From Perkinsus chesapeaki ATCC PRA-425 (lineage: Eukaryota; Protista; Perkinsozoa): 64,000 bases of DNA. Within the stretch, counting starts at the first letter, position 1, and each line of letters starts with the position of its first letter. This document shows positions 3,133 to 41,488 of the stretch, one piece after another. Position numbers and translations under genes: made by a program. Location: the NCBI GenBank assembly GCA_013115145.1, contig JAAPAO010000061.1, forward strand, positions 1-64,000, given 5' to 3'. A model generated the notes under the pieces. The model searched no databases. It saw only the letters and a list, made by a program, of their open reading frames with translations, and was not told where the DNA came from.

Positions 3133-4459
3133 ATTTCATCTCAGTCAACCACGAGCCGTCCACCTCGTATGAAGCTCAAGATAGGTAAGATCGGCAGCTG
3201 CCGTAGCCTCTCAATAATGGCGTCTCAGGGAGGAGGATATGAAGAAGAATACAAAGCCAAAGACAGCTCCTGTCTCTAAGGGCAGAAATAAGCGTGGAAA
3301 AGCTAAGGTCGTACTAGGGCGGGGCGGTTTCGAGTTTCGGGATTGTCGGTATGAAAGATGCGTATTATTGGCGACACCGCTAGGGGATGACTTACATGAA
3401 TAATTGTTCAGCGTGATATAAACTCGGTGAGCACATGCTCCCATACCGTCGAGCGCTTCACTCGTGCAGTATCGCCAGTGGAGATTCCTTCTTCCGCGCC
3501 GTTCCGAGAGGCCTACGGCGAGAAGGTTCCAAGAAATGTCATCTAGCATCCCCGCCGCTTGGACGGATGGTCCACGTAGCCGTTAGCCTTCAAACGTAGA
3601 TGGTCTATGGGTTTCGTCCTCCCTGAGATTGTCTCTATCAGAGCCCGAAGCCCCTGCCACTAATGGACCTAAGAGAGTTGCCGCCAGTAGAAGCATTGAG
3701 GGAAGCGCTCAAGCTGAGAACAGGAAGTCTCAAAAACGCGTAATGGATCTTGTACGGGTATGTTCTAAAGTAGATGTGTTTTAGTTATCGAGCACTGGAT
3801 AGTAATGGTAACGGTGAAGTAGGATTCTCTGAGCTGGAAGCAGGGCTGGGATCTCTTGATATTGATTCTAGACAGATAGCTGGTGAGGAAGAAGGGGGGA
3901 AATGGGCATGTGGAGGAAGATAAAGGAGGAGTCTTAATGAGAATGTATTCAAGGTTTCTGTTTCTTCCTGCACTAGTAACATATTTTATATTATATCTCC
4001 TCCGCACTAGTAACATATTTTATATTATATCTCCTCCGCACTAGTAACATATTTTATATTATATCTCCTTCGCACTAGTAACATATTTTATATTATATCT
4101 CCTTCGCACTAGTAACATATTTTATATTATATCTCCTTCACATTAGTAACATGCACCTTCGCAACTCTCTGTCTTATTGTCATTTAATCACGTATCCTCA
4201 TTAAGCTTTTCCTATTCAGATTTGGATCTCCGCAGTCTCTTTAAACTACTCGACTCGGATAGTAGCGGGCAACTGAGCCTAGAGGAGGTACTCCACGCTT
4301 CGCTCATTACCGTTACTTTTCTTCAAGGTGCTTGGTATCAGCTCTCTCACTGAGGAGGAACCATGGCCTGAGCAGATCACCGATGAAAATCTCGATGGGC
4401 TCTGGCAGAGATATTTACACCGTACAAGAGATGTTTCGGTTGGTGGTCAGCCAAGGTGA
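3133..4459 (+). CDS. Multi-exon EF-hand calcium-binding protein (5' end not defined)
   Basis: Manual splicing gives AYRALDSNGNGEVGFSELE and LFKLLDSDSSGQLSLEEV, both canonical EF-hand loops. GT-AG intron 3883-4219 restores the frame; stop TGA at 4457-4459. Confidence 0.7.
3970..4152. repeat. 34-bp AT-rich minisatellite, 5 full copies plus a degenerate partial copy, inside an intron
   Basis: Unit GCACTAGTAACATATTTTATATTATATCTCCT(C/T)C starts at 3970, 4004, 4038, 4072 and 4106, head to tail with no spacers. Confidence 0.97.
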
Positions 4460-5037
4460 TAACAGGGTCTATTAAGCGGGACCACCGTATACAGTAGATA
4501 AATATCAATGTCACGTCATGAAGGTTTTTACATTCTTCAACTGAAGGACGATCGTTCTGTTTATCAAACCATGATAAGGCCGCTCGGGAGCCTCAAACCC
4601 GAAATATTCCCCCTGCTGGAAAAATTCATTTTTCTAGTTCACTGTATAGTAGCATATTCTTGGTTATCTCGATGGGCGTGCCGGGAAATCATCCAGTTAG
4701 TGTTAGACGTGTTCCACTGGAAAGCTTTTTGTAGGGATTATGCCGTTAGTTTGTATTCGATTGTAATTCTCGGTAGCATCTTCCTTCGGTAAAAGTGTAT
4801 TGGAAGTGATTTTGGTATTAGTGTGTCAGGGTAGAGCCTTTCATGACGACGGGGCAGCTCTTGGCGGTATTCCGCGCGAAATCTCATTCAGTTAAATATT
4901 TCCTATCAAATTTCTCGCTAGAGGTTTTGCTGGTAGAGTTTTTCTTTAACGCACGATTCTTTGGTCAGAATGGCGAAGTGGGAAGGGTCGCCCGCGGCTG
5001 ATAGGGAACTTCAAATAGTACAGAGGCGGTGTAGGAG

Positions 5038-7634
5038 ATGGGAAATGAGGAAGGAAGAAGTGTAAGGATTAGAGGAAGTTTCGGTATGGAATTAAGTGGA
5101 TATAGGCGTCGACACCTGAGGGAAAATGATGAGTTTTCGGAGCAAAGGAAAGGCATATGTCTGTCATTGGCAAGGCAATCAGCTCAGCAGTACATGGGAC
5201 TACATAGACTCAAGAGGAGTGGCAATGCTGCTTATGAAGGCAAGGGCAGCAGTAGCAGCAGGTAGTGGGGGAGCAGGGGCTGGATTGAGGCTCAGGGTTG
5301 GTTACCCGAATGCAGTACGAATAACTGTTATACTATTATTGGCTATCGTTAATTTGGTCATCAGTGCTGCTGCCTTTGGAGAAGAGCAATATGATAATCT
5401 ATATTAGTTTATTTGTGAAACTATTTCATAACTTCAGCACGGCACAGTGTTACAAAGACGGTGTAGTTACTGTAGATTCTTGGAGTCTTTGAGGAAAAGA
5501 TGGTATGGAACTTGTTATGCACGAAAGACGTATAGATTTTAAAGTACTTGGGTAGTTGATTGAATTGCGGCGAACCTGTAATAAAAATACCTCCACGGGT
5601 AGTAGCGCTCGTCTTCATACTACATGGTTCACAATTTTCGGTGGGTAGTAACCTGGCTATCATGAATAAGAGGCGTTGACCTGGTCGAAGGTGGGGCGTG
5701 TGCTAGTTGTGAATAGAGATAGATTTATAGTGCCACTAGGCAGAGTCAAACAGGAGAAATAATGATACAAGAAATACGACGAGGGTGGTGACGGGATATG
5801 TCGGTTCAAACGGAGCTGCTATATTGGGCAGTGTTTCCAGACTTTTTACATCTTTCTTGTTAGGTTCCCTCTTCAATCCATGGAGATATCTAGCACGGTA
5901 TCATCAAGGGTAGATCTCCTCGTTGATCAATGTGCATTACTGTTGACTGCAGCTTAGGCGGCGAATGGCTGAGCAACGCTTGAAGGGGAGGGTGGGGATG
6001 AGGAAGAGCTCTACGGCAGGAGCGTCTGTGGCGTCGGGGCAAGGTGGGACTTTAAGAGGAGAAGGCATCTCACATCATCCAATTTGTGGTGCATACTTCA
6101 GAACAACGTATTTATTCGGCAGGCCCCGACCCTCGAAGTCCGAGCAAACGTGGTGGTGTTGCGATGCTTGGGAAGGTGCCATTTTATAAAGGCAGTGCAC
6201 TCGACCGCAGTATTGCTTTGAGGGTTATGTACGACTTCTCCAACCTGAATAAGCAAGTAGCAGCTAGAGCTGTTATGGAGGTAAGATATAGTGCTGCTAT
6301 ATGATAGGGTATGAAGTATTAACTTCTATTACTTGCTTTACATTAATTTTTTCATGTTTCATTAGTTTTGTTGTCTTCATTATATAATATAAGGTTCATT
6401 AGATCGATCGATTATTACCCCTCGTATAGTTTGATCATCAAGCTATAAGAGGATAATAATTGATCAGATTTGTCATTTTGCTTTAACCTTAACCAAAACG
6501 AACCTTGGAGACCTTTGTCATTGAGCCTCTAGGATGTATAAATATGATCAACACTACCAAGGGACTCGTTGAGCATCGCCCTTTCGATTTTGTAGGCGGA
6601 GAAGCGCGATATGGAAAGGATGAAAGAAAGACAGCGGCACATAGAAGGAGTTGTGAAGGACCTGGCCGGACTGAGGCGAGAGGTGACTAGTGCAATGTTT
6701 ACCGGGAATTTAGCAAGTTGGTCAGCTTTGTGCTTCGACAAACGCTTTGGCCAAGGTGATAGGGAAAAAGAAAATACGTCAGGAGCACCCTAATAGAAAG
6801 TCTATAGGAGCACAGGTGAGTCTAAGTGAGCCGGGTCGCTGGGTTGACTAGCTGCTGGTAGATTGTGACATCTTTGGGGGGCTTCCGAGAGATATCTAAG
6901 GTTGAACCGAGCTCCGCGGAGAAAGTGGGATTCTTTGCCGTCTCGTTAAGTGAAGCGGAAAAGCAAGTAAGGATGCGTTTTAGTCGAGGCTATGTTTATA
7001 TTGCCTTGGGCATTGACACAGTCAGTCATCGATATGTCAACTTACCCCTTTTGGTACTAAAATGTTATGATTGTCATCTCGTTGTGCGAACTCGTTTTGT
7101 AGTAACGAGTTTTTCACTTTCCCGAGCGAGACATATACTATACATCAGTTAATATTACAAATGATGGCTTTCGCCAACATACAGGTCTCATTTCAGTGTC
7201 TCGTTTCATCATCTTCAGCATCATAGAGAACCGGTATAGTGCTTTTACGCTATTTTCCCGCAGCATCACTGTGTGGCTGTCTGAGCAGATAAGAGATATG
7301 GCCAGAAAGCACGGCGTTTCGATACCAGATGCTGAAATGATATATCAGAAATTCAGAGAAGTTGATAGGGATAACAGCGGAGCAATCGAAAGGGACGAGT
7401 TTGATAGGCTAATGGGATCGTAAGTGCTCCTTGCCGGGATCGAACTTGGGCGGACGGGTGTTCAGTTTTAATCCCGGCGTGGATCTCCGGAAAGGCCAGC
7501 TTGACAGCTGGTGGAGAGTGATTGATTCTAACCGTACAGGAGAGGTCAAGTTTGAAGAATTTTTAGTTTGGTAGTGTCCCCGAGTTTTCTGGCGCGTGAC
7601 GTTTTCTCTCAGGTATGCTCGCAATCTTATATGA
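5038..7634 (+). CDS. Multi-exon hypothetical protein with coiled-coil segments and a C-terminal EF-hand pair
   Basis: Exons read KFREVDRDNSGAIERDEFDRLM and WWRVIDSNRTGEVKFEEFLVWYARNLI*. Upstream exons and the start are tentative. Confidence 0.6.
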
Positions 7635-23400: not shown

Positions 23401-26400
23401 AAGATATGTGGTTTGCTTAAGTGAAATAGCAGGCTTCTTGGTGGCCTCCCGTGCGCTTTGGCTTGCTCTTTCTGGGAGGTCATTCGACTTGACCTTCATG
23501 TATTTGAGAAGGGATGGTGCGTAGGTACGAGAGCTTTCCAGGAAGATGTCTGAGACAAAGCGGGAAATGCAGAGAGCTTCATCTCGAGGAGGTGGGTACC
23601 ATTTTGTAGTCGCCTGTTGAAGAAAGCGAAGTTAGTGACCGATTGGCGAATCTTGTAGCCTTAAGTACTGAACGAGTTGTATAGGAGAGCGGAGCTTGAG
23701 ACTTGATGAAGTCTGCCGAAGTTTCCCAAACAAACTGGACTAACATATCCCCTCCTGAATCCTTTTTAGAATGCGTTAACATTTGTTTACCAAGTCGCTA
23801 AAGGTTGAACATCTCAAACTGGAGTTGGACATATCAGACACGAGGAATTCAGTGGTATAACATCCATAACAAAACCCAGAACTGTTAAATCTGGATGCCG
23901 AGCGGGAAAGCAGTCATTATTTAGCATTGGTTTTGCACTGTACGTGACATAAACAATGTGCTCAGATTCGGCGCAGCAGGACTCGTGTGATGCGGAACTC
24001 GAGAACACAGAATCGATGTAGGGTGAAGGATTGGCCATCAGGGACGTTGCTGTTTGCAGGCTGCGCTTAATTGGAGCTTCCTTACATGGCAGGTTGCAGG
24101 ACGAACTCCGGAACTCTGCGAGGTGGTAGGAAATAAGGCTGAGGGAAGGAGGTTGTGCTCATTAGTAGCTCAGGGCACAGTAGCTTTCGCACCTTAGTGA
24201 CTCATCTCCGTGAAGGGCGGATGACAAAATTTTATGAACTCTCGTGGCAGATCTCTGAGCTCTGTTTAAACCTCTGTTGTGAAGTATCTTACCAGTTCTG
24301 AGAAAGACAAACAGATGTATTAACGCTGCAGCTCAATAGTGGCATAGGTAGCAGGCCTCGTTGCCTCTACTTGCGCCGAATTTGCTATTGGTTAGACCTG
24401 CCGGTGTAGCAAGGAACATCCGCTTCAGGTCCTCTCCAATTCATTCTAGGAGATCCCCGAACGTTGGCAATGCCTCTAATTTCCCAAGACTCGTGTAAGT
24501 ATTCTCAGCAGCCTGAGTAGTATTGTCGTTTTCAGGAACCTATCGCAGGACCCTGCCGTATCCGGCTCTTTGTCGTAGGTCCTTCAAGCCTGTTGGGCGC
24601 AAAGCCGATGCTTTCAGGTACGAATTGGACCCTTCAACGGCCTCGACCATCGGTTGTGGTTCTATGGACTCTGTGAAGCTCCGAGATGACGCGCTAAGTG
24701 TGAATGGCAATATGTGCGAGCTTGTTGCCGGTGATGAGGCCGGTACAATGAACCTCAAGATCAATAATTGTAGGGCTACTAGCTCTCCAGGGAATTGGTT
24801 ATTATTGCTCAGCGTCGGAGAACCGAGTACTAGTTAATGGCCGACAAGTCGTGGACGATACGGTCGTGCGTGATGGAGACCGGCTGGGCTTCGGTCACTC
24901 GGTTTGCTTCCGACTTGTCATGTCTGAGAAGGTCTCTACCAAGGCAACTGATGCATTGCAGCGGAGAAATGAAACCCATGTACGTTCGCAGTGGACGGTG
25001 GCTTTGAAGTTGCCTTTTAGCACGATCTCGCCGAGGAGCGACGAAACGAAGGTTGCCGCGAATCTCCAGAATACCAGGAAGCTGTCCAATTTGCCGACGA
25101 ACTCAGCGAGAGGATAGGCCGCACGCGGGCACAGGAATTCCTCAGCAACTTCTCGCGCGCCCTGCCTCTTGTTGCGGAGGCGAATGCTTTAACGTAGCTG
25201 ACGATAACGAAGGGATTTCGGTTATTCTTGTCGCAGTTGTGCACTACGGCCTCATGACCGGATACGATTCTCTTTGGAAGTCGTGGTGGACGTTCTGACC
25301 TTCGGAAGTGTTGTTCCTGAATTGGTGGTAAGCACTGAAATTAACCAATGGGAGAATTGAAATATACAGTGGCTTGTTACTAGCCTAGCTCTCTTTTAGG
25401 TTCGAGTTTGGGCTCCGATTGATAACGCTGACCGTTGGGCAAACGATCCGAATCAAACTCGCACTGCAGGTAAGAAACTGTGTACGGGTACAGACGAGGC
25501 GATCAGCCATTGAAAAATAGCGAGTGCAATGTAGAAGCTCGTGAAACAGAGTATAGTCTGCCTTATGCAACTCCCCAGGCTAAGACGTGTCATTGTGGGG
25601 TAGGTACCGAGAAGTGGGACATCGCGAGGCAGTCCATGAAAGATGCCCGAGTTCGGTCAGCATTCGGTCTTGATGCGAACATGGGTGGGAGTCAATTGGA
25701 ACATGCAATAGAGATATGCGAGGTGGTTTGGGTGTTGTTGTACTTTAGCGGCATGAGATGGTAAATGAAATTTCCAGCGTCAGTTTGGCCGAGTGGTCTA
25801 AGGCGCCAGACTCAAGTTCTGGTGGAGAGATCCGCGTGGGTTCGAACCCCACAGCTGACATTTTCTTCATTTTTCTCAGCTACCAGTTTTTATGCAAAAG
25901 CTTCGCCTTTTACGAGAACTTTACGACCGGACAACCCGAAGAAGCTCGTTCGCCGCACCCGATTTGACCACGATTGAGAACAACGTGTGGTCAGCTATTA
26001 CATGCTATGATGTGAGCAGCAGCTCCCTCGGAGGCCCAGTTAGCTCTTGGTCGCAGGTCCGCGCCGCCATTGCTGATTTGAACTGCGAGCTTGCTGACAC
26101 CACGGCGGGGAGCCAGCGTCGAGCGGACGAAACGGAGCGTTTGCGGAAGGAGATTGCGGATATGCGCGCTGAGGTTGCGAGAGCACGACAATTGTGCGAG
26201 AAGATTGTAAGGCGGTCGGTCCGCTAAAGAACAAAGGAAGGTGGCTCCTATTATGCAGGCATCACATGAAGCTACTATCGTTGAGCTGACCGCGAAGGCA
26301 TCGAAACTCGAACGCACAGAGCACGAACTTCAGATGGCTGAGCTAGAGCTGCAAGCCACGAAGTACTATTGGTCCGTCGGCCGCTGATGTTCCGCACTGT

Positions 26401-30461: not shown

Positions 30462-32369
30462 ATGGTTGGCTTGCGATGCTCGCTTTCTCGGCTACATCAG
30501 TTCTCCTTTGCTGCGCGACTACGGTGTTGCGACAGCTCTCGAAAAGTTCTAACTCTGGTGAACACCTTTCCTAACATGCTCATCGAGGCCCGAAATGCCG
30601 AGGCAGTTATGCACAGAGTCGCTTCCTTCCCGCCAAGTAGAACCCTTCACGAACTATTCCAACGAGTCGCAGTGGAACTCACTCGAGAGTCTTTCCCGCA
30701 AGATGCTCGGTGGGACAACTCTAGCTTGATGAGCATCCTGCGATCAGTGGTGGAGTTCCGAGTCAGAAGCCCTCTGCTTTGTGATGGCGGCGCCGCCAAG
30801 AGCTTGCTCGAATTCGTGGCTCTGCGAATAGTCCCGGACTCGTGCACCCTTGACGAGGCCGCCTATGTTGTGTCCTCGCTGGCGCGGCTGAAAACGCTGG
30901 TCGCCGATTCCGGTCCCTGCATGAATGTCGCCTGCCAATTTGTCGATGAAGTTCTGAAAGGTTTTAAGTGTGGAGATGCTCCCTCGGTGAATGTTCTAGC
31001 CACCTTCGCATGGGGTGTAGTAGAGCTTCTTGGGTCTTCGACCGACGGGCGCGCACAGAAGGCCATCAGTGGTGCCATAGAGTACATTGCAGCCTACCAG
31101 ATCCAGGAATTACGGATTCCAGATGCCATTGTGATTATTCGGGCAATAGCACAATGTGAGGGAGTAGAAGGTGTTGGTGACTTCTGGAGCGCACTAGCTG
31201 GCAGCCGGTGTCTTGCGGGCATGGACAAAAGCTCTATAAAGCCGCTCGTGAAGTCCCTTGAACAGCCATCTAGTGTGTCTTATTGTGTATGGGGATCTAT
31301 TCTTTCTACAATGACAATCAACAGCATCGTTAAGAATCTCTCTCCTGGAGACCTCGCAAATGTACTGCGTACAGCAATAGTACCGATACGGTACGAGTCC
31401 AATGTGAACACTAGGGACCTGGCAGTACAGGTGTTCCGCTACATTGAGTCGGAGCCTCAAGGCCGCATTGGGCCAAGCCATATGGTGGATATTTGCTGGT
31501 CGCTGAGCATTCGATGTCATCCTCCTACTGCTGCCATTCTCGGTGACTTAGTATCACTCGGCACGGCTGTTGCACAAGGCCACGGTAGCATCCCGGACGT
31601 GTCACTTGGTCGTCTTGCTGAAACTCTAGCGAGGACGGCTGTTAGCCGTGGCTCTGTGCTACCCGGGGTACTGGACTTCTTCAACCATGTGGTCGCGAAA
31701 CGCCAATGGAAGGCGAAGCCTGCTGCGCAGATGGTCGTTGAGGCGGTGGCTCACATTTCGGATAGAAGAGTCATCGGCGACCGTCAGGCCCGAGCTTTGC
31801 TCCAAGGAACTTTAACAGGGGTGTGCGGGGGCGCCGTGAAACCCGAGAAGACCCTGCAAGTTCTCGTTCGTGCTCAAGTTGACCTCAATCTGGACTGCCT
31901 CACCCGGCAACAGCGATGCGAATTAGAACGTGCTCGCGCTGATGCTCATTGTGCTATTGCGAAGATCCTGGGGAGGGAGTCGAGCGATAACCTCGTCCAG
32001 GAGCTTCAAGAAGAAATTCAGAATCGCGGGCTTGAGCTACGCGTTTCATCCACGTGGCGGTGCCCTCAGAGCCTTTGTATTGCTGATATAACAGTGCTTC
32101 GACAACAGACTGATGATCCTGTGCTCTTCGTGGACATGGACGGCTCCCCATATGACTTGTGGTCTTACGAGAGACAATTACGGTATGGGCTTCTCAGTGC
32201 GGTATACGGTGAAAGTACGATCATGAGATCCAGCGACGAGGGCGCATCTAGGGCGCTGTCTCTAATGGGTGGACCAACCGATATGATTGTGAGCGACCAA
32301 CAACCTTTGGAACGAACGTGTGCTAGCTTGATTGAAAGAGCAATGTCCCGACTCGACCCAGTTGCCTGA
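30462..32369 (+). CDS. Second helical-repeat protein with a degenerate RAP domain, intronless
   Basis: 635 aa. Repeats TLDEAAYVVSSLARL, LSPGDLANVL, IGPSHMVDICWSLS. C-terminal WRCPQSLCIADITV...LFVDMDG...RQLRYGLL. Arg/Ser-rich N-terminus. Confidence 0.72.
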   Translation: MVGLRCSLSRLHQFSFAARLRCCDSSRKVLTLVNTFPNMLIEARNAEAVMHRVASFPPSRTLHELFQRVAVELTRESFPQDARWDNSSLMSILRSVVEFRVRSPLLCDGGAAKSLLEFVALRIVPDSCTLDEAAYVVSSLARLKTLVADSGPCMNVACQFVDEVLKGFKCGDAPSVNVLATFAWGVVELLGSSTDGRAQKAISGAIEYIAAYQIQELRIPDAIVIIRAIAQCEGVEGVGDFWSALAGSRCLAGMDKSSIKPLVKSLEQPSSVSYCVWGSILSTMTINSIVKNLSPGDLANVLRTAIVPIRYESNVNTRDLAVQVFRYIESEPQGRIGPSHMVDICWSLSIRCHPPTAAILGDLVSLGTAVAQGHGSIPDVSLGRLAETLARTAVSRGSVLPGVLDFFNHVVAKRQWKAKPAAQMVVEAVAHISDRRVIGDRQARALLQGTLTGVCGGAVKPEKTLQVLVRAQVDLNLDCLTRQQRCELERARADAHCAIAKILGRESSDNLVQELQEEIQNRGLELRVSSTWRCPQSLCIADITVLRQQTDDPVLFVDMDGSPYDLWSYERQLRYGLLSAVYGESTIMRSSDEGASRALSLMGGPTDMIVSDQQPLERTCASLIERAMSRLDPVA

Positions 32370-32472: not shown

Positions 32473-34624
32473 ATGGCCGTCCCGAGTCGAGGGGAGAATA
32501 TGCGACTTCTGTCGCAGCAAAAGAGTACATGGATTACCCTGCTCAACCCACACGCAACTGCCGGTTTCCTTGGCGGTCTCTGTAGGTTAGGTTACAGGGA
32601 AATGAGCTCCATCAACCTATTATGTAAAAATTGCTGCTACACAGCTTGCTGGCCACTCTGAGACATACTTGCTGATTTCTAAAAACATATCGTAACGTTA
32701 TCGCTGATAGTTGGGCAGCGAGAATCTTTCTAGTATCCTTCTTCTTGTACCAACAGAAAGACTAGGGAGCAGAAACCTATTTGACATAAGCGCTTACATG
32801 GTGATTTTAACCGAATCGGATAATGCCGCCAACAGTCGTCCGAAAAATGATCAACCATGTTATTTAAGGTGACGTATGAGTGTCATGTACTGAAGCACCT
32901 CATCCTGTTACTAATAGTTACGTATGAACCGATTCGTATGTGGCTTTCGCGCCTGTGTGGTGCTTTCGAATAGGATATGGAAAGACCACAACATCTTCCC
33001 CATCAGGCTCAACAGCTGCGTTTTACCCACTGGACCTGCTGAGGGTTCATCTGCAGCGCCACTATGACGCCTTAACCCGTCCAAGCATACGAGAACAGTT
33101 TCTGAGAGCTGTTCGGGAAGAAGGCATGCGATCTGCTCTTTATCGAGGTTTCAGTAGGCCAAGCATAATGTCACTCTAAGATGTTGCCGCCTTTGAGTTC
33201 TGGCTCGATGAGCGATATAACATGCCTCTTTATATGCCTGCTTATACTGTATTATTCCTTTATGGATTACTCCGCCCCTCAGGTGTGAGTGTGGTAGGAG
33301 CATCTCTTGCGTGGGGCCAGTACTTTTATGGGTAGGACGTTGACTTATTGGAATTTTTCGTAGCTGTTCAACTCAGATACTCTACTTTCAAGGCCGCCAA
33401 TGTTTTTAACCTCTCGCCCGCTGCTAACCACCTTGTCAGTGGATTTGCTGCTGGATCGTTGGTAAGGCTGTTCTTGCTCAGAGTTGTGTAAATCCGTACC
33501 GCATACTTCTCTAGGCGCTCTACATCGTATAGGCTGGAGCACCTTTGTCCGTTGTTTCTCATCTACTTGCATTTCGAGAAACTACTGTATGTAGCTTCCA
33601 TTTGAGGCCCAAGCTGACGCCCTCGAAGAAGCGGCTTCTTAGAAGCCTTCTCACTATTGGCGTTTATTCCTTTATTGGCGATCTTTACTGCTATCAGTAA
33701 CCGCGGTCTCCGTGGTAAAGGCTTCGGCCGCGACTTAGGTACAGATAGTTCTATGTCCCCTATGGGTGACTAAACTGAACGTACAGCTGGCAGTCTATCC
33801 TGGTGGCGTTAGCAGATGCGTAAGAGAGCTCTACCGAGACCGAGGCATCAAGGGCTTCTATCGTGGACTGGTAAGCTTCGGTTACACCTGAGTAGCATCC
33901 CGTCCATTTTATCATAAGCCTCTCACCATCGCTGATAGTAGCCTTGAAACAGCCTCGCTAACCCAGAGGAAAATTTAATATCATATTTAACGGAACTCTG
34001 AGGGGGCCTTCATGGCTGACTTTTGACAAGACATGGTATACCATTTCTTCTCCAGGCCCCCAGTCTTTGGGGATCAGTGCAAGGGGGTATACAGTTCATG
34101 ATCTATGAGCCAACTAAGTGAGAATTGTGGTAATCCATTCACGGCATTCCCGCGCCCAGGTCGAAACTCAAGTCGTATCGCGATTGCGAGCAGCTTTCTC
34201 CATCTGACATTGTCATGGCGACGACCATATCCAAGTCGGCTGCAATGGTGACATGGTATATTGTCTTTTTTGTCATCCACGCGGCTTCAGATAATTGTGA
34301 ATCCTATAACGGTCTTAACAGTGAGGATGAGAGACGCTGGGTTCCGAACCCACAACTATGATGACTTGTGGAACTCTGTGAAGAGGTGTGCTCTATTCGC
34401 TCATTTTTTCCGAGATTGCCGTTTAGTACTCTTGCGAAGGACGGCATTACCGGCTTCTACAGGGGAGTGTTGGTTTCCTTGGTAAGGTCACTGAGGAAAG
34501 TCCACGAGAGTTGGTTGATTACTTTCTTTAGGTGAGAGTAATGCCAGCCCAGTGGTGTACGTTTGTAACCTACGAGTATGTTAAAGACGCCATTCTCCGC
34601 TGTCAAGCCGATATCACTGGGTAA
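32473..34624 (+). CDS. Mitochondrial carrier (SLC25), folate/FAD-carrier-like
   Basis: Spliced ATAGFLGGLC|STAAFYPLDLLRVHL (PxD/ExxK/R motif); ALYRG...GASLAWGQYFY; IKGFYRGL; NPITVLTVRM; final exon VRVMPAQWCTFVTYEYVKDAI. Confidence 0.85.
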
Positions 34625-35221
34625 CTCTCGGCAAATACCATTACGGCGGTAAGGTGCAGTTAGAGTCACTGCAGGCCTTGAGACACACATACTCCGGACT
34701 AAGCTCCTGTTGACGCAGCAGGTGGTGGGTGGTATAGTCCAGAAGAGCGTAAGGTGCAGTAGAAGCTGAGACACCTAAGCCATAGATGCCTTGAGTTATC
34801 TTCTCCCACTGTTGACGTACGGGAGGTCGTTTGCTGTCACCATCTCTGCCTGAGTCTGATCTTTTGAAGTGGTCAGATTTTTTCAATGGTTTTCATATGC
34901 ACCTTGCATTGTAGTGTAGTCAATAGTAAGGGGCTGGTTACTGGGCCTCTAAGTTGCCGATTGGGTGTTGGAGTTGCTCATCATTAGCTAGTACCATTGT
35001 ACCAAACATCACAGCCTGCCTGTAAGTGCATTCCCGTGCTTCGGTGTGACGAGACGCAACTATTGGACAGTGTGAGTTGCCCTGCCAACGCTTTAATATG
35101 ACAAGTCGAGGAACAATCACTAGCAGAGACGCGCACCTCATGGCGGGCATCATGGCTGCTAATGCTAATACACAAGTCGGGGAAATCGAAGGCCCAGTGA
35201 ATATCGAGTAAATAGAACTAG

Positions 35222-37212
35222 ATGAGCTTAGCGTTGAATCGGAAGACTTTCACTGTTATCAGGCAGCTTCGGGCTTTGCGGGAACGTCGCCTCCCGTTTG
35301 TTATGCGGGGGATCGGCGCAAAGTGGGCGATCGTTCGAACCTGGTCAAATGACAAAAAGCTGAAGTCTCTGGCGAGAAAGGAGGAAAGAGAATGTCCAGA
35401 GCGGAAGTGCGGACTTAAGGGACATCGCTCCTCCCCAGTAGTCCCCCACAGATACACCGTTTATGCCCCTGACCCTGCCGGTGATGTTAACCAGAGTGAC
35501 GCAATGCCAGTCGCTAAAATGAGCATCTCTAAGTCGGTGGTTGCCTGAGTACATTTTGCAGGCTATCTTCATTGCAGATTCCTCGAGGTGGGGAACCGAA
35601 GAGGCCAGTATCTCCTCGGTGTACCAGACAAGCACGGTCGGGGTCTATCACCTTTCGAGCCATGCTCAAGAACAGACGTTTCCAGAGGTACGCCATCTAA
35701 ACTCGATTAGTGCCCCTTCACTTGATGATCAGGACATGGTAGTGAAGGAAAGGTTTACAATCCCGTCTTTGCAGCTGATATGGACAAGTCCGGTGACACC
35801 TCGGTATTCGAGGATCTTTTCGGCCAGGGATGCATCGACAGCAGACGTCATTTATTTTTCAATGCTGCCTACTGCTTTACCAACTGTCACTATGACACCG
35901 ATTGGAATTGTTATCTCTGTGCTAGAGGTGAGGCCAGGGGCAATGCGTATCCACGCTACCATCATCATCACACGTGGTGAAGCATCGTCATCCCCACGCT
36001 GCAAGTCCTAATGATAATATCCCTAACCTATAGTCGAGCGTGTCTGTGCTGGTGGGGATGGCAATAGCCAAACGTTACAGGCAACCGCCGCTGGTCCCTG
36101 GCGCATCCTGACCAAGACCCGATACTGAGCCATAATGGAAGTGCGCGCTCACAGTACCAGCCAACGCATCGGAGGAATGCAGAAGCCGTCACTGATGTCA
36201 CTAGTGGAACGAGGACCTGGAACCGCTACGCTGACCTGGTGAAGTAAGGTGAGCTCTAGCGCTCTCGTAGCGAGGCCCCTGTTACTTTGGATTCCATTAT
36301 GAGCCTGACTTCCTCCTATAACACCTGGGGGGATTAAGAATTAGTCATCATGACAGCTCTCGTCTCGATAGAGTCTTCTAATAGGTAACGATAGAAACAT
36401 GTACAGTGTTATTAACCGTGCCATGCGACGTTCTGGCCATTGCTTGTTCTTGTCATCCTCGCGGTTTCTATCAGATTTGTCGTGGTCGATCTGAACCCTG
36501 GGGACGTGCTTATCGTTCCACCGCGATGGTGGCATGTCGTCGAAGGCTCTCTACCAGCCGATGGAAGGCCGCGCTTTAGTGCTGGCATTAATTGGTTCTT
36601 CACGTCAGGCTGGGGAGGGGCGTCGAGGTTTTCGGTTCAATAGGTTTTGGGGGGTCAGGTACGACTACGAGGAGACGTATCGAACATGTCCTACCGATAT
36701 TAAAAATATGATCGGCCTGCCGAGTGACGACAAGTCCGTATACCTAGGCTCAGCTGTAGAAATGATGAAGGGCTCACTTCCATCACAAAGAGCTGCAGAG
36801 CTTATGGAGGTTCGTGCCAGAGGGAACCCGTCGTCTCGAAAGGCCAATGCTGCTTTCAGATAGCGAGGCATATGGCTGACACAATGAGTGTCCCGCTCTT
36901 GCAGTGTAGAGTCCTGGACCAGCTTTTGGCAATCGCCGTTGGGTAGGATGAGCCTCCTGGGTATGTCAGTGTCGTGATCGTGATTAACAGATATGTGGCT
37001 GCTAGGCGTGAACACGTCGAGCCGCAGGGCGTGGAAGACGCGCTGCGGAGGCTGGTCGAAGCTGCAGTAAGCTAGGGCTGCTGGGGTTCAACATTTTGTT
37101 GCGATGGAAGCAAATAATCTAGTCATTAAACATCTACCCCAGATCAGTCGTAAAAAAGCTCTTTCGGGGTAAGCGCTCTTTTCACTACCGATAATTGCAG
37201 AGGGACTCCTGA
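35222..37212 (+). CDS. JmjC-domain (cupin) 2-oxoglutarate/Fe(II) oxygenase
   Basis: PFVMRGIGAKWAIVRTW; TNCHYDTDWNCYLCARG (HxD); LNPGDVLIVPPRWWHVVE (distal His); SAGINWFF. The 3' end is uncertain (37212-37429). Confidence 0.85.
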
Positions 37213-37506
37213 GGGGCACACTGCTATAATGACTAACCACAGCTTCCACATCAATGATCCAGCAATGATGTATCAGAGCCGTGACAGGACGATCCAAACC
37301 TCGAAGACTATGAACCGTATCATTTTTTGTACTTTCCAACGAGTACTTATCCCACCGAGACGTTGTGCGTACGCGTGCAGCGTTGAAGCACCCTTGATGC
37401 ACGTTCATTCAGCGATGTCAATCGAGTAGGGTACCTAGACGGGACTGCTCTCCGTGACCTTAGACGTGCTTTGTCCCATTCAGTTAAGTACCATTAACTC
37501 CCAGCC

Positions 37507-38052
37507 ATGGCCGTATCAAACCAGGTCTGCATTCCAGAGGAGCTTTGTCATCAGGTTGATTCTTTCCACATCGATAGGCTTTACCGCATCTGCCGTTTCT
37601 GTGCCAATCGTGTGAGACTCAATAAACGCCAGGTGAGGGCCAACCCACCAACTCAGGCTGGGCGTGTGCTCTCCAAGCAATTCTTGGGTATTGACTTCGA
37701 AGGTGAACTGACAGACATTCGGCTACCCAAAGTCCTGTGCAGCAGCTGTAGGCGGCGTTTGACACATCTTCGAGACAACCACATGTCCCCAGCTAAGTGG
37801 GAAGAAAGGAGAAAGCTTTATGGCAAAGACGCGGCCTGGTTTGGTGCACCCATCGGTGCTAGTGATGGCTCAGAGCACGTCGAGGCCATCATATGTTCAG
37901 CTGATCAACGTTGCAAGGTTTGCCGCATTTACAGCAATCCAAAGTCCAATGGTTTCCTGAAAAAAGGTTGGCCGAAACCAGGTCGCCCGCCCGTCCGGTC
38001 TATGGGCGGCGACTGTCGCGTTGGAGAGGAGACCGCTAATGTGCCGCCATAA
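37507..38052 (+). CDS. 181-aa zinc-finger protein resembling the RAG1 N-terminal / Chapaev transposase Chapa domain (possible transposon derivative)
   Basis: H21-x7-C29-R-x-C32, then GID(63), P74-x3-C78-x2-C81, W111, H124, C136-x2-C139 and KPGRP. Intronless; no transposase core follows. Confidence 0.6.
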   Translation: MAVSNQVCIPEELCHQVDSFHIDRLYRICRFCANRVRLNKRQVRANPPTQAGRVLSKQFLGIDFEGELTDIRLPKVLCSSCRRRLTHLRDNHMSPAKWEERRKLYGKDAAWFGAPIGASDGSEHVEAIICSADQRCKVCRIYSNPKSNGFLKKGWPKPGRPPVRSMGGDCRVGEETANVPP

Positions 38053-38408
38053 AAAGCGGTATCTGCCCTCCGAGAGCTCGAGAACCCTACAGCTCCAAGT
38101 CCCTTAGATTATTCTGTTTCTGTTGTCTTTCTCGTGAAGTAGATGTATTTCTTATTATGATGCCGTATAGTATCAAGAGCGGACTAAGTAATCCTTGCGT
38201 TGGAGAATTCCTAGTGAGGGCTGAATTTGGTGCGCGTTAACGCGTAAACCCTCAGTCAGTCACCGAGTGGGTGCAAACATGATTTTGCCCACTGTCATTC
38301 GAATCAGTGCTCGGAAGTTACGATTACTGAGTCAAGTAACCCAGATATGGTTTACTCTGGGCTAGTCGTAGCGCTGGTCGTTCATTGTGTCTTGCTTTTC
38401 AGGTCGAT

Positions 38409-41400
38409 ATGTCCAAACCCATCGCTGCAGGCGAAACTCGCAAGCGCAAACGCCAAAGCATCGACGATGGGGCCCCACCCACGCCCAAGTGGTTACCATT
38501 CTGCTCAACTACAAAGTGGGAGTTATAAGTTGCTATTGATTGTGACGTAACGTCACTGACCTTTGAATGCATTGCATGGACCTCTTACCAGTTATGGTAC
38601 GTACACTGTAGCCTGTAATATGCAAGTTCTACGTATAAATATCCTCGCTTTGTGTGGTAGTTTACGGTGAATGGATGCCCACCTGTCTCAGACTTTATCG
38701 GTAACATGTGTTCATCCACCTAGGGTTATTGCCATGGCCACGGCCACGCATGCCGCGTGTTAGCGATGTATACATGTTAAGTGTTCAGCGAGCTCTGTGG
38801 GGCGTCGCCTAGCTTCCGAAGATTATCCCTTAGCTAGTGATGGGCTTATTGACTTTCCTAGGATAGAGAGCTGGGCTGCTTCTCGTGAGGTATGATACGA
38901 ATCGTATCATTCGGCAAGTTTTTAAGCGTCAGTTTGGCCGAGTGGTCTAAGGCGCCAGACTCAAGTTCTGGTGGAGAGATCCGCGTGGGTTCGAACCCCA
39001 CAGCTGACATTATTATTAGTCATCAAGTCTGTACCTTTTCCGAGGGTAAACGGGCCTAATTCACCTAGCTCAGGAGGCCCGCGAAGTAACACATGTTCAG
39101 CTAAAGAACAACCGTACTGTTTTCTTTTTTCAACGACCATTACTCTATCGATGTTTTTTGTTTATCGCGCAATGCTTTGTCTCCGCGCGGATGTTGTGCA
39201 AGAGAGTTGCACGGCTAGGCGAGACGAGACGGTGACATTCCGTGAGACGTGCGGGCTTCGAGCGAACTACATCTATGCAACCGCCCCCATTATCTCATCA
39301 GCATCATATTTCTTCTTTTACGATGTACTATTCTCCACCGCAGTTTCTTCTAGGCCAGAGGGTCCAAGCGATACCTCCGAGATATGATCCAAGATTTCCT
39401 ATTCACGCGGTAGCACAGCCTCCTCGGGTCAATAATGGTGCATTGTAAGTATCTGAGCTCCTATGTGGCTCTAGTAGAGCTGCTCTACCATCAGTAACTG
39501 TATGGATATAGTCATTGTGAGATGCCCATTACCTTGACGAGCTAAGCTTGCAAGAGCGATTATATCCTCGACTTGCAGCATAATGTTATCCTGGAGGGAA
39601 TTTTAGAATGTATAAATTCAGAGTCAAATGAGTTAATTCCGTATTTGAAAAGTCAATCGAATGCGGCAAATTCAGTACTACCCATTGACAGTGGGCAGTA
39701 CTAAATTTACTACTAAATTTGTAGTAAATTACAGTGCGCCACTGTAATACAGTGAATGTATCACAGGCCTTCCGCCTGAGAGGCTCGGAATCAATACAGT
39801 ATGCTCAGGTTGCAACAATTGTCCCAAGTGAAACAGCAGCTTCCTCAAACGAATCCCACCACCCCGACCCTGCCACAGAGTACGTAAATTCATTGAGCTC
39901 CGTTAATAACTCTGTTTCAGTAATTCAACGGTCTGATGATCCCCCACCTTCGGTCGGGAATCTCGGGAAGGAAAAAGGGAAGCCAGCGTAAGACACCTCG
40001 GGCCATTGACAGCGCTCTGCCCGCTCTATCTTCTGATTAGCACGTGCTCACAAAATCTCGCGTGGTCTCCAGGAAACATCCGTGAAGCTTGAGGCTTAAG
40101 CTCCAGGCCAGGCCTAAGCATTTTCCTTTTATGTACCTTAGGAAGTTGAAAAAATCTCTTTTGTTAGAGCGGAGCGAGCCCAGCTGGACAGAAGCTCACG
40201 AAAACTATGCACTGCCAAAACTGTTATATCGTCGTCAAGCTCTACACGACTACTGGAGCGCAGCAGAAGATTCGAGGACCTGTACGATGACCACAAGAGC
40301 CGCCAGGAGCGCCTGATGTACTCAGTCTTGCAGCTAAGAAAAATTTATATCATTTTGTGTCTGAAACAGAGCATTGATGCAAGAGAAGAGAGCTGCGGAA
40401 GAAGCGGAGTTCGCTGAAATGCAGAAAAAAGTCAATGATTCTACCAAGTATTTCTGTCTTAACTCGATTCCTACCTCGCCGTCGATATTCGAGGAATGCG
40501 TCCTTAGCTGCTCACTTGTCTTCAGAATAATTCAGAACCCTTATCTTAGGAGAGTCGATCTTGCTAAATTCCGAGCGCGGTTGGATGAGGAAGTTCGGTC
40601 ACGTGCTGAGCGAAAACGATTACGTGAGAAGGAGAAAGAGCAAGCTGTCAGGGAGAAGGAGCTCACAGAGGTAACTCTCGAGCCGTATCTGTCAGATTGC
40701 TATATCCTTTTGTGTTTTAGCTTATGCATTGCTCCTTTCAACCAATGAAAGCTGCAGATTTCCGCAACTCGACAAAGGTGGGTTCTTCAGCTCTCATGAG
40801 TCTTCGAATTGACTTCTGTTCTGCGCAGAGCTACACGTCCAGTATGAACCAGTCGAGCTCCGCAGGATGTCATAGTGGTGGCAACTCTGCACTTCCCGAC
40901 GTTCTGTGCGATGGTAAGATACAGTTCCATGTCCTCTGCATGCTGCCATCTCTTGCAGAACGGCGAGGCCCATTGAGAAGCGACATGTTAAAAGAAGCTG
41001 TTAAAGAATTCCTGCAGTCTGAGGAAGGGAAAACATCCCTGTAAGTGCCCAGCCAGCGATAAAAAGATTCTCCCAGCGTTACGGCGAGCTATCGTTTGTT
41101 TTTTTCAGCGAACAGCATCTAGAAGCATATCGCCGCATAAATCCCCTTGCTGACGAGAGCGTACTTGTAGAAGAAGCCGAGCACGATTTAAGTGAGTCGG
41201 AAACGTTTATCATACATGGGAGACCGGGGCGTCCTGAATTTGGCAGACTACCGATCGGGCAACTTGCACGTTTGAAGGAATTACATCTACCTACTTTTGG
41301 AGTCTCACTAAACTCTGGCCGTATTCCCGCAACACCTTTTTGTTGTATCAGTTACTCAGTTCGAGAAGGAGTTTGATCAGAGCATACTTGAGAGTATCTC

Positions 41401-41488
41401 GCCATTCGAGGCTGAAGAGTCCGCCATAGCCATGGACGGACAGACGCCATATGACGACGAAACAAGTGTGAGCATGTGGCTTGAGTAA
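38409..41488 (+). CDS. Multi-exon hypothetical coiled-coil protein (5' exons tentative)
   Basis: Coherent exons from about 40170: RRFEDLYDDHKSRQERL, MQEKRAAEEAEFAEMQKK, RAERKRLREKEKEQ, ending SVSMWLE* at 41488. A possible first exon MSKPIAAGETRKRKRQ starts at 38409; its linkage to the rest is not certain. Confidence 0.45.
38928..39009 (+). tRNA. trnL: tRNA-Leu(CAA), copy 2
   Basis: 82 nt identical to 25779-25860. Confidence 0.97.

Follow-up and report, generated by a model that had tools for sequence, protein, structure and literature searches.

An intronic open reading frame of Perkinsus chesapeaki related to the zinc-finger head of Chapaev-like transposases

The Chapa (CHAPA) domain is a complex zinc finger common to the Chapaev, Chapaev3 and TransibSU transposases and to the N-terminus of RAG1 (Kapitonov and Koonin, 2015; PMC4411706), and accounts of how the V(D)J recombinase arose give a central place to this domain and to the Chapaev/TransibSU/RAG1 lineage. 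In vertebrate RAG1 the domain corresponds to the Central Non-core Domain, or CND (from residue 87 to 217), part of which is covered by the Pfam family PF12560 (RAG1_imp_bd); the CND is a monomer that carries two zinc ions and binds DNA without sequence specificity (PMC3124419). In the literature searched, the CHAPA domain and the lineage have been described from animals only (PMC4411706; PMC4079192), and no paper was found that reports Chapaev or Transib elements from Perkinsus. The present analysis concerns an open reading frame (ORF) at positions 37507-38052 (+ strand) of a 64,000-nucleotide stretch of DNA from Perkinsus chesapeaki ATCC PRA-425 (assembly GCA_013115145.1, contig JAAPAO010000061.1, positions 1 to 64,000; hereafter the window). 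The ORF is homologous to the N-terminal head of a family of Chapaev-like transposases, is located within a Cupin_8 gene, in its last intron, and is probably an immobile derivative of such a transposon in which only the head is left.

A reading frame with relatives among full-length transposons

The ORF is intact, with an ATG start and 181 codons, and is the longest in the interval of about 35000-43000. An earlier note, made from the letters of the window alone, had read in this frame a series of motifs of RAG1 N-terminal or Chapaev type; the ORF is present as described there, and every motif it quoted is found in the sequence. These are H21-x7-C29-R-F-C32, I62-D63-F64, P74-x3-C78-x2-C81, W97, C136-x2-C139 and G159-R160-P161, and the stop, placed about 20 residues after the GRP in that note, follows it by 20 codons. 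The candidate zinc ligands are H21, C29, C32, C78, C81, C130, C136 and C139; all eight are kept in the ORF, each at a position conserved in 84-100% of family members.

Homology to the family extends over residues 1 to about 170 (37507-38016). Within this part, residues 18-142 (37558-37932, + strand) are assigned as the CHAPA-type domain proper from conservation, the published CHAPA alignment, the confidence profile of an AlphaFold2 model and the RAG1_imp_bd neighbours of that model. The GRP motif (37981-37989, + strand) is conserved in the family and is of the GR(P/K) type that stands right behind CHAPA in Chapaev transposases. The last stretch of the ORF (38005-38052, + strand) begins with what is left, in degenerate form, of the next small finger and runs on through unrelated residues to the stop: Gly replaces the first Cys of the CxxC finger found there in the family (C167G, next to S168G), the frame closes 14 codons on, and homology ends at 38016-38037, a probable deletion junction.

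When 1.84 billion representative proteins were searched exhaustively, 22 relatives were found, the best with an expectation (E) value of 6.9e-39 and 51% identity, so that the ORF is, judged by its sequence homologues, not a chance reading frame. A word-seeded protein search with the ORF alone as query gave 0 matches, and no record was found of a gene with exactly the 181-residue product. All relatives that carry a species name come from Perkinsus (P. olseni, P. marinus or P. chesapeaki), and the unnamed ones, together with 12 extra members found with a profile (P0034-P0045), come from ENA or Logan assemblies. Relatives are carried by three ENA contigs, of which the two measured have a G+C content of about 35%; the neighbouring ORFs on these contigs encode THAP, P-element-like, hAT/ZBED, Tectonin and two-domain arginine-kinase domains. 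Because of the THAP, P-element-like and hAT/ZBED neighbours and the 35% G+C, these AT-rich contigs are probably animal. The family tree places the ORF as sister of the P. olseni/P. marinus lineage (support 98/93). A sister clade exists in the AT-rich, probably animal genomes; for the acquisition from an animal host that the earlier note thought possible, the tree gives no direction of transfer. One annotated protein of P. chesapeaki (P0009, 273 residues) joins a transposase head to a C-terminal fragment of Peptidase_S28 (Pfam E 9.7e-05); its gene model probably starts in a remnant of a transposon and continues into the gene of a host protease.

The long members of the family (P0003, P0006, P0017, P0024, P0028, P0030 and a near-complete copy at locus L009) share a head of about 165 residues, which is followed in order by GRP-x-EQSP, a small C-x2-C...HD...C finger, a KRPR-type basic patch, a GHLGLG segment and a core. 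The core carries the motifs LK(F/L)QxDGGxxFLK, ACD(L/F)KVxA(M/L)(M/L)VGIQ...PCPFC, LK(A/S)HIxSxHxEEY and SSEQSGExxH. In these, the putative D, D, C(2)C, H(4)H and E fall in the published order of the signature common to EnSpm, Mirage, Chapaev, Transib and RAG1 (Kojima; PMC12730594). In addition, the ESM Atlas model of P0028 residues 385-727 has template-modelling (TM) scores of 0.59-0.74 to clusters with RAG1_RNase_H, RAG1_ZnC2 and RAG1_ZnH2.

At the level of the whole element, the hallmark of Chapaev is a target site duplication (TSD) of 3-4 bp together with invariable 5'-CAC...GTG-3' termini (PMC4079192). Three elements of the family show both, with a 4-bp TSD and CAC...GTG ends: L006 of P. 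olseni (3666-6230; 2,565 bp, terminal inverted repeats (TIRs) of 138 bp, TSD AAAG), L002 of P. olseni (3153-4306; 1,154 bp, both TIRs kept, TSD TACA) and L009 of an AT-rich genome (9204-12826; 3,623 bp, TIRs of 384 bp that are 98% identical, TSD GACC). Their termini are alike, starting with CACAGGTGT and ending with ACACCTGTG. The L009 element, from a long-read assembly (ENA ERZ20067936, 35% G+C), is young, and its transposase is split into three ORFs. The full-size L006 element is flanked by two gene calls, each of which matches the ATG9 family, and may sit within an ATG9 gene or have split one. The Dada superfamily, which has already been described from P. marinus (PMC3706591), was considered as a source and rejected: it has a DxxH motif and targets small-RNA genes, and is without the RAG1-type C(2)C/H(4)H layout.

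CHAPA assignment of the head

In the published alignment of CHAPA domains (Additional file 5 of PMC4411706), the first part reads H-x3-L-x3-CR[IVF]C, [IV]D[IVF] and (H/P)P-x2-[FMI]C-x2-C, and the last part W-x-P-H-x3-5-C-x-[IV]C, to which the Chapaevs add a KGR(P)-type basic motif (PMC4411706). Each of these motifs is found in the Perkinsus family, in the same order, in a by-eye comparison with a table damaged by optical character recognition; in the window ORF the second site reads C130-x5-C136-x2-C139. Comparisons of features and of predicted shape point in the same direction. An Atlas feature search with the ORF gave as its top match (0.93, 203 of 256 features) a cluster dominated by molluscs, whose sole recurrent Pfam family is RAG1_imp_bd; a zf-AD cluster reached just 0.80. 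An AlphaFold model of the ORF built on a 31-sequence alignment has a mean predicted local distance difference test (pLDDT) score of 74, rising to about 90 for residues 11-105 (a single-sequence AlphaFold2 model, at pLDDT 35, was unusable). Among the ten neighbours listed by an Atlas shape search are five vertebrate RAG1 fragments and one arthropod RAG1_imp_bd cluster. These six align over 107-126 residues with TM by query of 0.44-0.50, which is borderline and compares predicted structures on both sides; for the arthropod cluster, TM by row is 0.62. With the architecture of the relatives and the published alignment, the two Atlas searches support the CHAPA or RAG1 N-terminal type proposed in the earlier note, and the head is, on motifs and models, very likely a CHAPA domain.

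Several results of sequence searching weigh against this assignment. PF12560 does not match the ORF at E up to 10, and a word-seeded search with profile A2 returned family members only and no RAG1_imp_bd protein. Similarly, sequence profiles of the core searched against the PDB did not reach RAG1. Because these profiles fail on the core, as does Pfam, which does not recognise it in the relatives, the link between the family and RAG1 is one of motif layout, predicted structures and element hallmarks, and not of sequence score. Pfam searches of 18 relatives or fragments (E up to 1-10) likewise gave no PF12560, just sub-threshold zf-AD and noise, and nothing relevant came out of sequence searches of the PDB that used the ORF or two profiles of the family.

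These results raise the alternative that the similarity to RAG1 and Chapaev is superficial and that the ORF encodes an unrelated treble-clef finger resembling ZAD. The only Pfam match to the ORF is zf-AD (PF07776; E 0.011, 16.4 bits against a cut-off of 28, residues 28-88), and the only analogues that VIA-align found among solved structures are ZAD domains (Z 3.2-3.6, root-mean-square deviation 3.7-4.4, 64-67 residues, all within residues 21-100); Foldseek against the PDB returned nothing at E up to 0.001, and a ZAD domain at E of about 2. The earlier note had held that a best profile match of zf-AD would speak against its reading. Formally this is the match obtained, yet it is uninformative, as it is below threshold and covers the first CxxC...CxxC module only. 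This predicted zinc module (C29, C32, C78 and C81) appears ZAD-like in sequence and in the model, which would account for the weak Pfam match. No RAG1 N-terminal structure came up in either fold search of the PDB, so that ZAD is also the best PDB match expected for a CHAPA domain whose relatives there are unsolved. Furthermore, the domain has a second conserved [C]-x5-C-x2-C site and a GRP motif, as CHAPA does, and in the relatives it is fused to a core with RAG1-type motifs within elements that have Chapaev-type ends; and in both the feature and the shape search of the Atlas, RAG1_imp_bd clusters rank above zf-AD clusters. A superficial similarity is therefore very improbable. As for the ZAD-like part itself, residues 21-100 correspond to 37567-37806, and the CND of RAG1 may, if the resemblance is real, contain a ZAD-like module of its own.

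Position in a host intron, decay and possible constraint

The intron that holds the ORF is the last of a Cupin_8 (JmjC-like) gene (37067-38402, + strand, phase 0, GTAAGC...TTTTCAG). It measures 1,336 nt, whereas its counterpart in P. olseni has 98 nt, and the other introns of the gene range from about 30 to 230 nt. The P. olseni locus, L004, was reached through the ortholog (P0033, 55% identity) of a neighbouring gene, and has the same gene order as the window: kinesin, a gene of 658 residues, a gene of 643 residues, Mito_carr, Cupin_8 and tRNA-Leu. In tblastx comparisons, the Cupin_8 exons at 35097-37069 align to L004 14542-16611. The end of the penultimate exon (36989-37066, + strand) corresponds to L004 16531-16611, and the last exon (38403-38528, + strand) is conserved with P. 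olseni (RKRKR..DDG..WLPF..TT.W), its part at 38445-38528 aligning to L004 16743-16826. The reading frame is continuous from 37066 to 38403. Family homology at L004 is zero. With an intron of 1,336 against 98 nt and no family homology at the syntenic locus, the P. chesapeaki intron contains about 1.24 kb of extra DNA with an ORF in the sense direction. The transposon-derived insertion spans approximately 37090-38375 (+ strand); its ends cannot be fixed, as no TIR or TSD survives.

Since the ORF lies on the same strand as Cupin_8, it could instead be an alternative or retained exon of that gene and not foreign DNA. The deposited annotation, one 1,106-residue model that joins Mito_carr and Cupin_8 and runs from 32473 to 41488, past the tRNA-Leu gene, does span it. 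However, read-through of the donor meets a stop two codons on (TAG, 37073-37075), the frame from exon to exon is continuous only if all 1,336 nt are removed, and the P. olseni gene has an intron of 98 nt at this place. The annotated model is itself probably a false fusion, since Mito_carr (256 residues) and Cupin_8 (455 residues) are separate genes in P. olseni, and it probably leaves the ORF out, given that no 1,106-residue P. chesapeaki protein appeared among the matches of the exhaustive search. An origin as a host exon is extremely unlikely. Elsewhere around the host gene, a neighbouring single-exon ORF at 30462-32366 is an annotated protein in GCA_013115145.1, with identical coordinates on contig JAAPAO010000061.1. 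Two tRNA-Leu(CAA) genes of 87 nt (25776-25862 and 38925-39011) are 100% identical, and both have syntenic counterparts in P. olseni (L004 5051-5141 and 17554-17643); in tblastx, 38925-39014 aligns to L004 17557-17646.

Little of an element survives around the head. When 32 family proteins were compared by tblastn with the whole window, matches were confined to 37507-38037 and no catalytic core was found; a profile of the post-head region run over the six frames of 36900-39000 detected no core remnant. The leader and the reverse-complemented tail share no long inverted repeat (Smith-Waterman score 30, shuffle mean 35), and general repeat searches of the intron for TIRs gave nothing. Between 37000 and 38500, no 8-mer comes within one mismatch of the family terminus CACAGGTG, and an exhaustive search for TIRs with a 4-bp TSD found 0 pairs where 0.23 were expected. 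The remark in the earlier note that neither TIRs nor a DDE core lie nearby is borne out by all of these searches. One stretch of 23 nt in the leader (37372-37394, + strand) is matched in the head-only P. olseni element L002, by a part of its leader (about 3316-3338) that lies about as far from the ATG. The match has a score of 29, reached by 0 of 300 shuffles, and was the only one in six tail or leader comparisons with other lineages; it is a weak sign, at the level of sequence, that the transposon-derived part extends upstream of the ORF.

Other copies of the family have also been reduced to the head. L002 is an internal-deletion derivative in which 964 bp of the 5' end are joined to 188 bp of the 3' end, with a head-only ORF of 217 residues. 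In P. marinus, the head-only copy at L001 still has its 3' TIR, and at L008, in an AT-rich genome, just the head is present within 3.5 kb on either side. The extra DNA in the window is like these head-only derivatives in scale and layout. The three Perkinsus loci of this type (the window, L001 and L002) are not syntenic.

The context is best fitted by a deletion derivative of a Chapaev/RAG-like transposon in an alveolate, which was one of the readings put forward in the earlier note. The source would be a cut-and-paste DNA transposon of Chapaev-like type, from the RAG1/Transib-related CMCT group, that inserted into the last Cupin_8 intron in the P. chesapeaki lineage. Presumably through internal deletion, it would have been reduced to a 5' leader and the first ~170 codons, which encode a putative two-zinc CHAPA head. 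Because the catalytic core and both recognisable ends are lost, the remnant would neither move nor cut DNA. Given its sense orientation within the intron, it is presumably transcribed in the host pre-mRNA and spliced out, and it presumably has no present function; if translated, the predicted product would be a small zinc-binding and probably DNA-binding protein with no catalysis.

The state of the ORF bears on how far it has decayed. Its terminal branch (0.96) is the longest in the tree, where the median is 0.26. It keeps 38 of 53 strongly conserved columns (72%), compared with 85% in its sister and a range of 64-94% in the family, and the conserved residues R55, Y60, T124 and R125 have been lost. 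Against the nearest relatives, the synonymous rate (dS) is saturated while the nonsynonymous rate (dN) is 0.41, and dN/dS is not computable. Two considerations speak against a mere relic. As dS is saturated at a dN of only 0.41, the ORF appears to have been under selection for most of its history, possibly while its lineage was still an active transposon. Moreover, some constraint on the ORF itself is possible, since an open frame with all eight ligands, in an element whose ends are unrecognisable, would be unlikely after long neutral decay.

The KP element, derived by internal deletion from the Drosophila P element, encodes an N-terminal DNA-binding domain only and represses transposition. 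By analogy, the head-only ORF could be functional, either as a KP-like repressor that binds the ends of the family or titrates the transposase, or as a domesticated, intron-nested DNA-binding gene. Besides the intact frame and the ligands kept despite the loss of the termini, the recurrence of head-only copies in three Perkinsus species and one AT-rich genome is consistent with this. Between the copies of P. marinus (L001 10001-10525) and P. olseni (L002 3488-4141), the DNA is 89% identical and, over 165 codons, dN is 0.03 and dS 0.38-0.48; the resulting dN/dS of about 0.06-0.08 indicates that on the path joining these two copies the head was under strong purifying selection. In addition, the vertebrate counterpart, the RAG1 CND, is itself a DNA-binding monomer with two zinc ions (PMC3124419). 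On the other side, the low dN/dS may go back to when those lineages were active elements, and internal deletions passively retain the sequence beside the 5' end of a transposon. The head-only loci of the three species lie at non-syntenic sites, and the window copy has lost conserved non-ligand residues and has the longest terminal branch. Domestication, the other possibility raised in the earlier note, is not supported: the ORF is absent from the syntenic P. olseni locus, and it is part of an intron-sized insertion. A functional head at this locus is thus unlikely. It is a doubtful proposition, and a broader one, that head-only CHAPA ORFs form a selected class of trans-acting Perkinsus zinc-finger proteins, acting as KP-like repressors or domesticated DNA binders, and that the window copy belongs to it; if it did hold, this would be the first functional stand-alone domain of RAG1 N-terminal type outside animals.

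Significance and comparison with known systems

For the host gene, the immobile head-only derivative favoured here is an ordinary dead insertion with no evident effect beyond a long intron. The ORF had been put forward in the earlier note as a candidate for an undescribed system, but it belongs to a known kind of transposon, related to Chapaev and RAG1. Its value is that of a further data point for the presence of the family in an alveolate that parasitises bivalves. The sister clade in AT-rich, probably animal genomes shares the CACAGGTGT termini, which makes transfer between parasite and host a testable proposition. The ORF also illustrates the ZAD-like character predicted for the RAG1 N-terminal domain in its first zinc module.

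The Chapaev superfamily (CMC/CMCT) is one of the closest described systems. The full-length relatives agree with it in the 4-bp TSD, the CAC...GTG ends, the putative DDE, C(2)C and H(4)H residues and the N-terminal CHAPA; the elements of Perkinsus and of the AT-rich genome differ from it in their long TIRs (138-384 bp), and the window copy in that it keeps no hallmark at the level of the element.

As regards the CHAPA domain and RAG1, the three CxxC pairs of the family correspond to C110/113, C175/178 and C210/213 of RAG1, the residues that Arbuckle et al. mutated to probe its two zinc sites (PMC3124419). The full-length relatives also place the domain N-terminal to a core with RAG1-type motifs. 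Several differences are seen nevertheless. The sixth candidate ligand, C130, is a Cys where most animal sequences have the His of W-x-P-H, and Leu or Lys precedes the Pro in the Perkinsus family in place of His or Pro. Behind the head, the family has no RING finger, unlike RAG1, but a small C-x2-C...H...C finger, which is degenerate in the window copy. Finally, published CHAPA members come from animal hosts and the host here is an alveolate, and the domain stands alone in the window ORF.

The ZAD domain (zf-AD, PF07776) of arthropod C2H2 proteins is similar in its treble clef, which the first module and the helix after the second pair of the head resemble. It differs in being a one-zinc dimerisation module placed ahead of C2H2 arrays, whereas the window domain has a second candidate zinc site and belongs to a transposase family, and the RAG1 CND is monomeric (PMC3124419).

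The KP element differs from the window copy in that the latter is also without termini. The likeness between them lies in an internally deleted DNA transposon whose ORF is the N-terminal zinc-finger head, predicted to bind DNA in the window copy, an arrangement that recurs at L001, at L002 and in the window.

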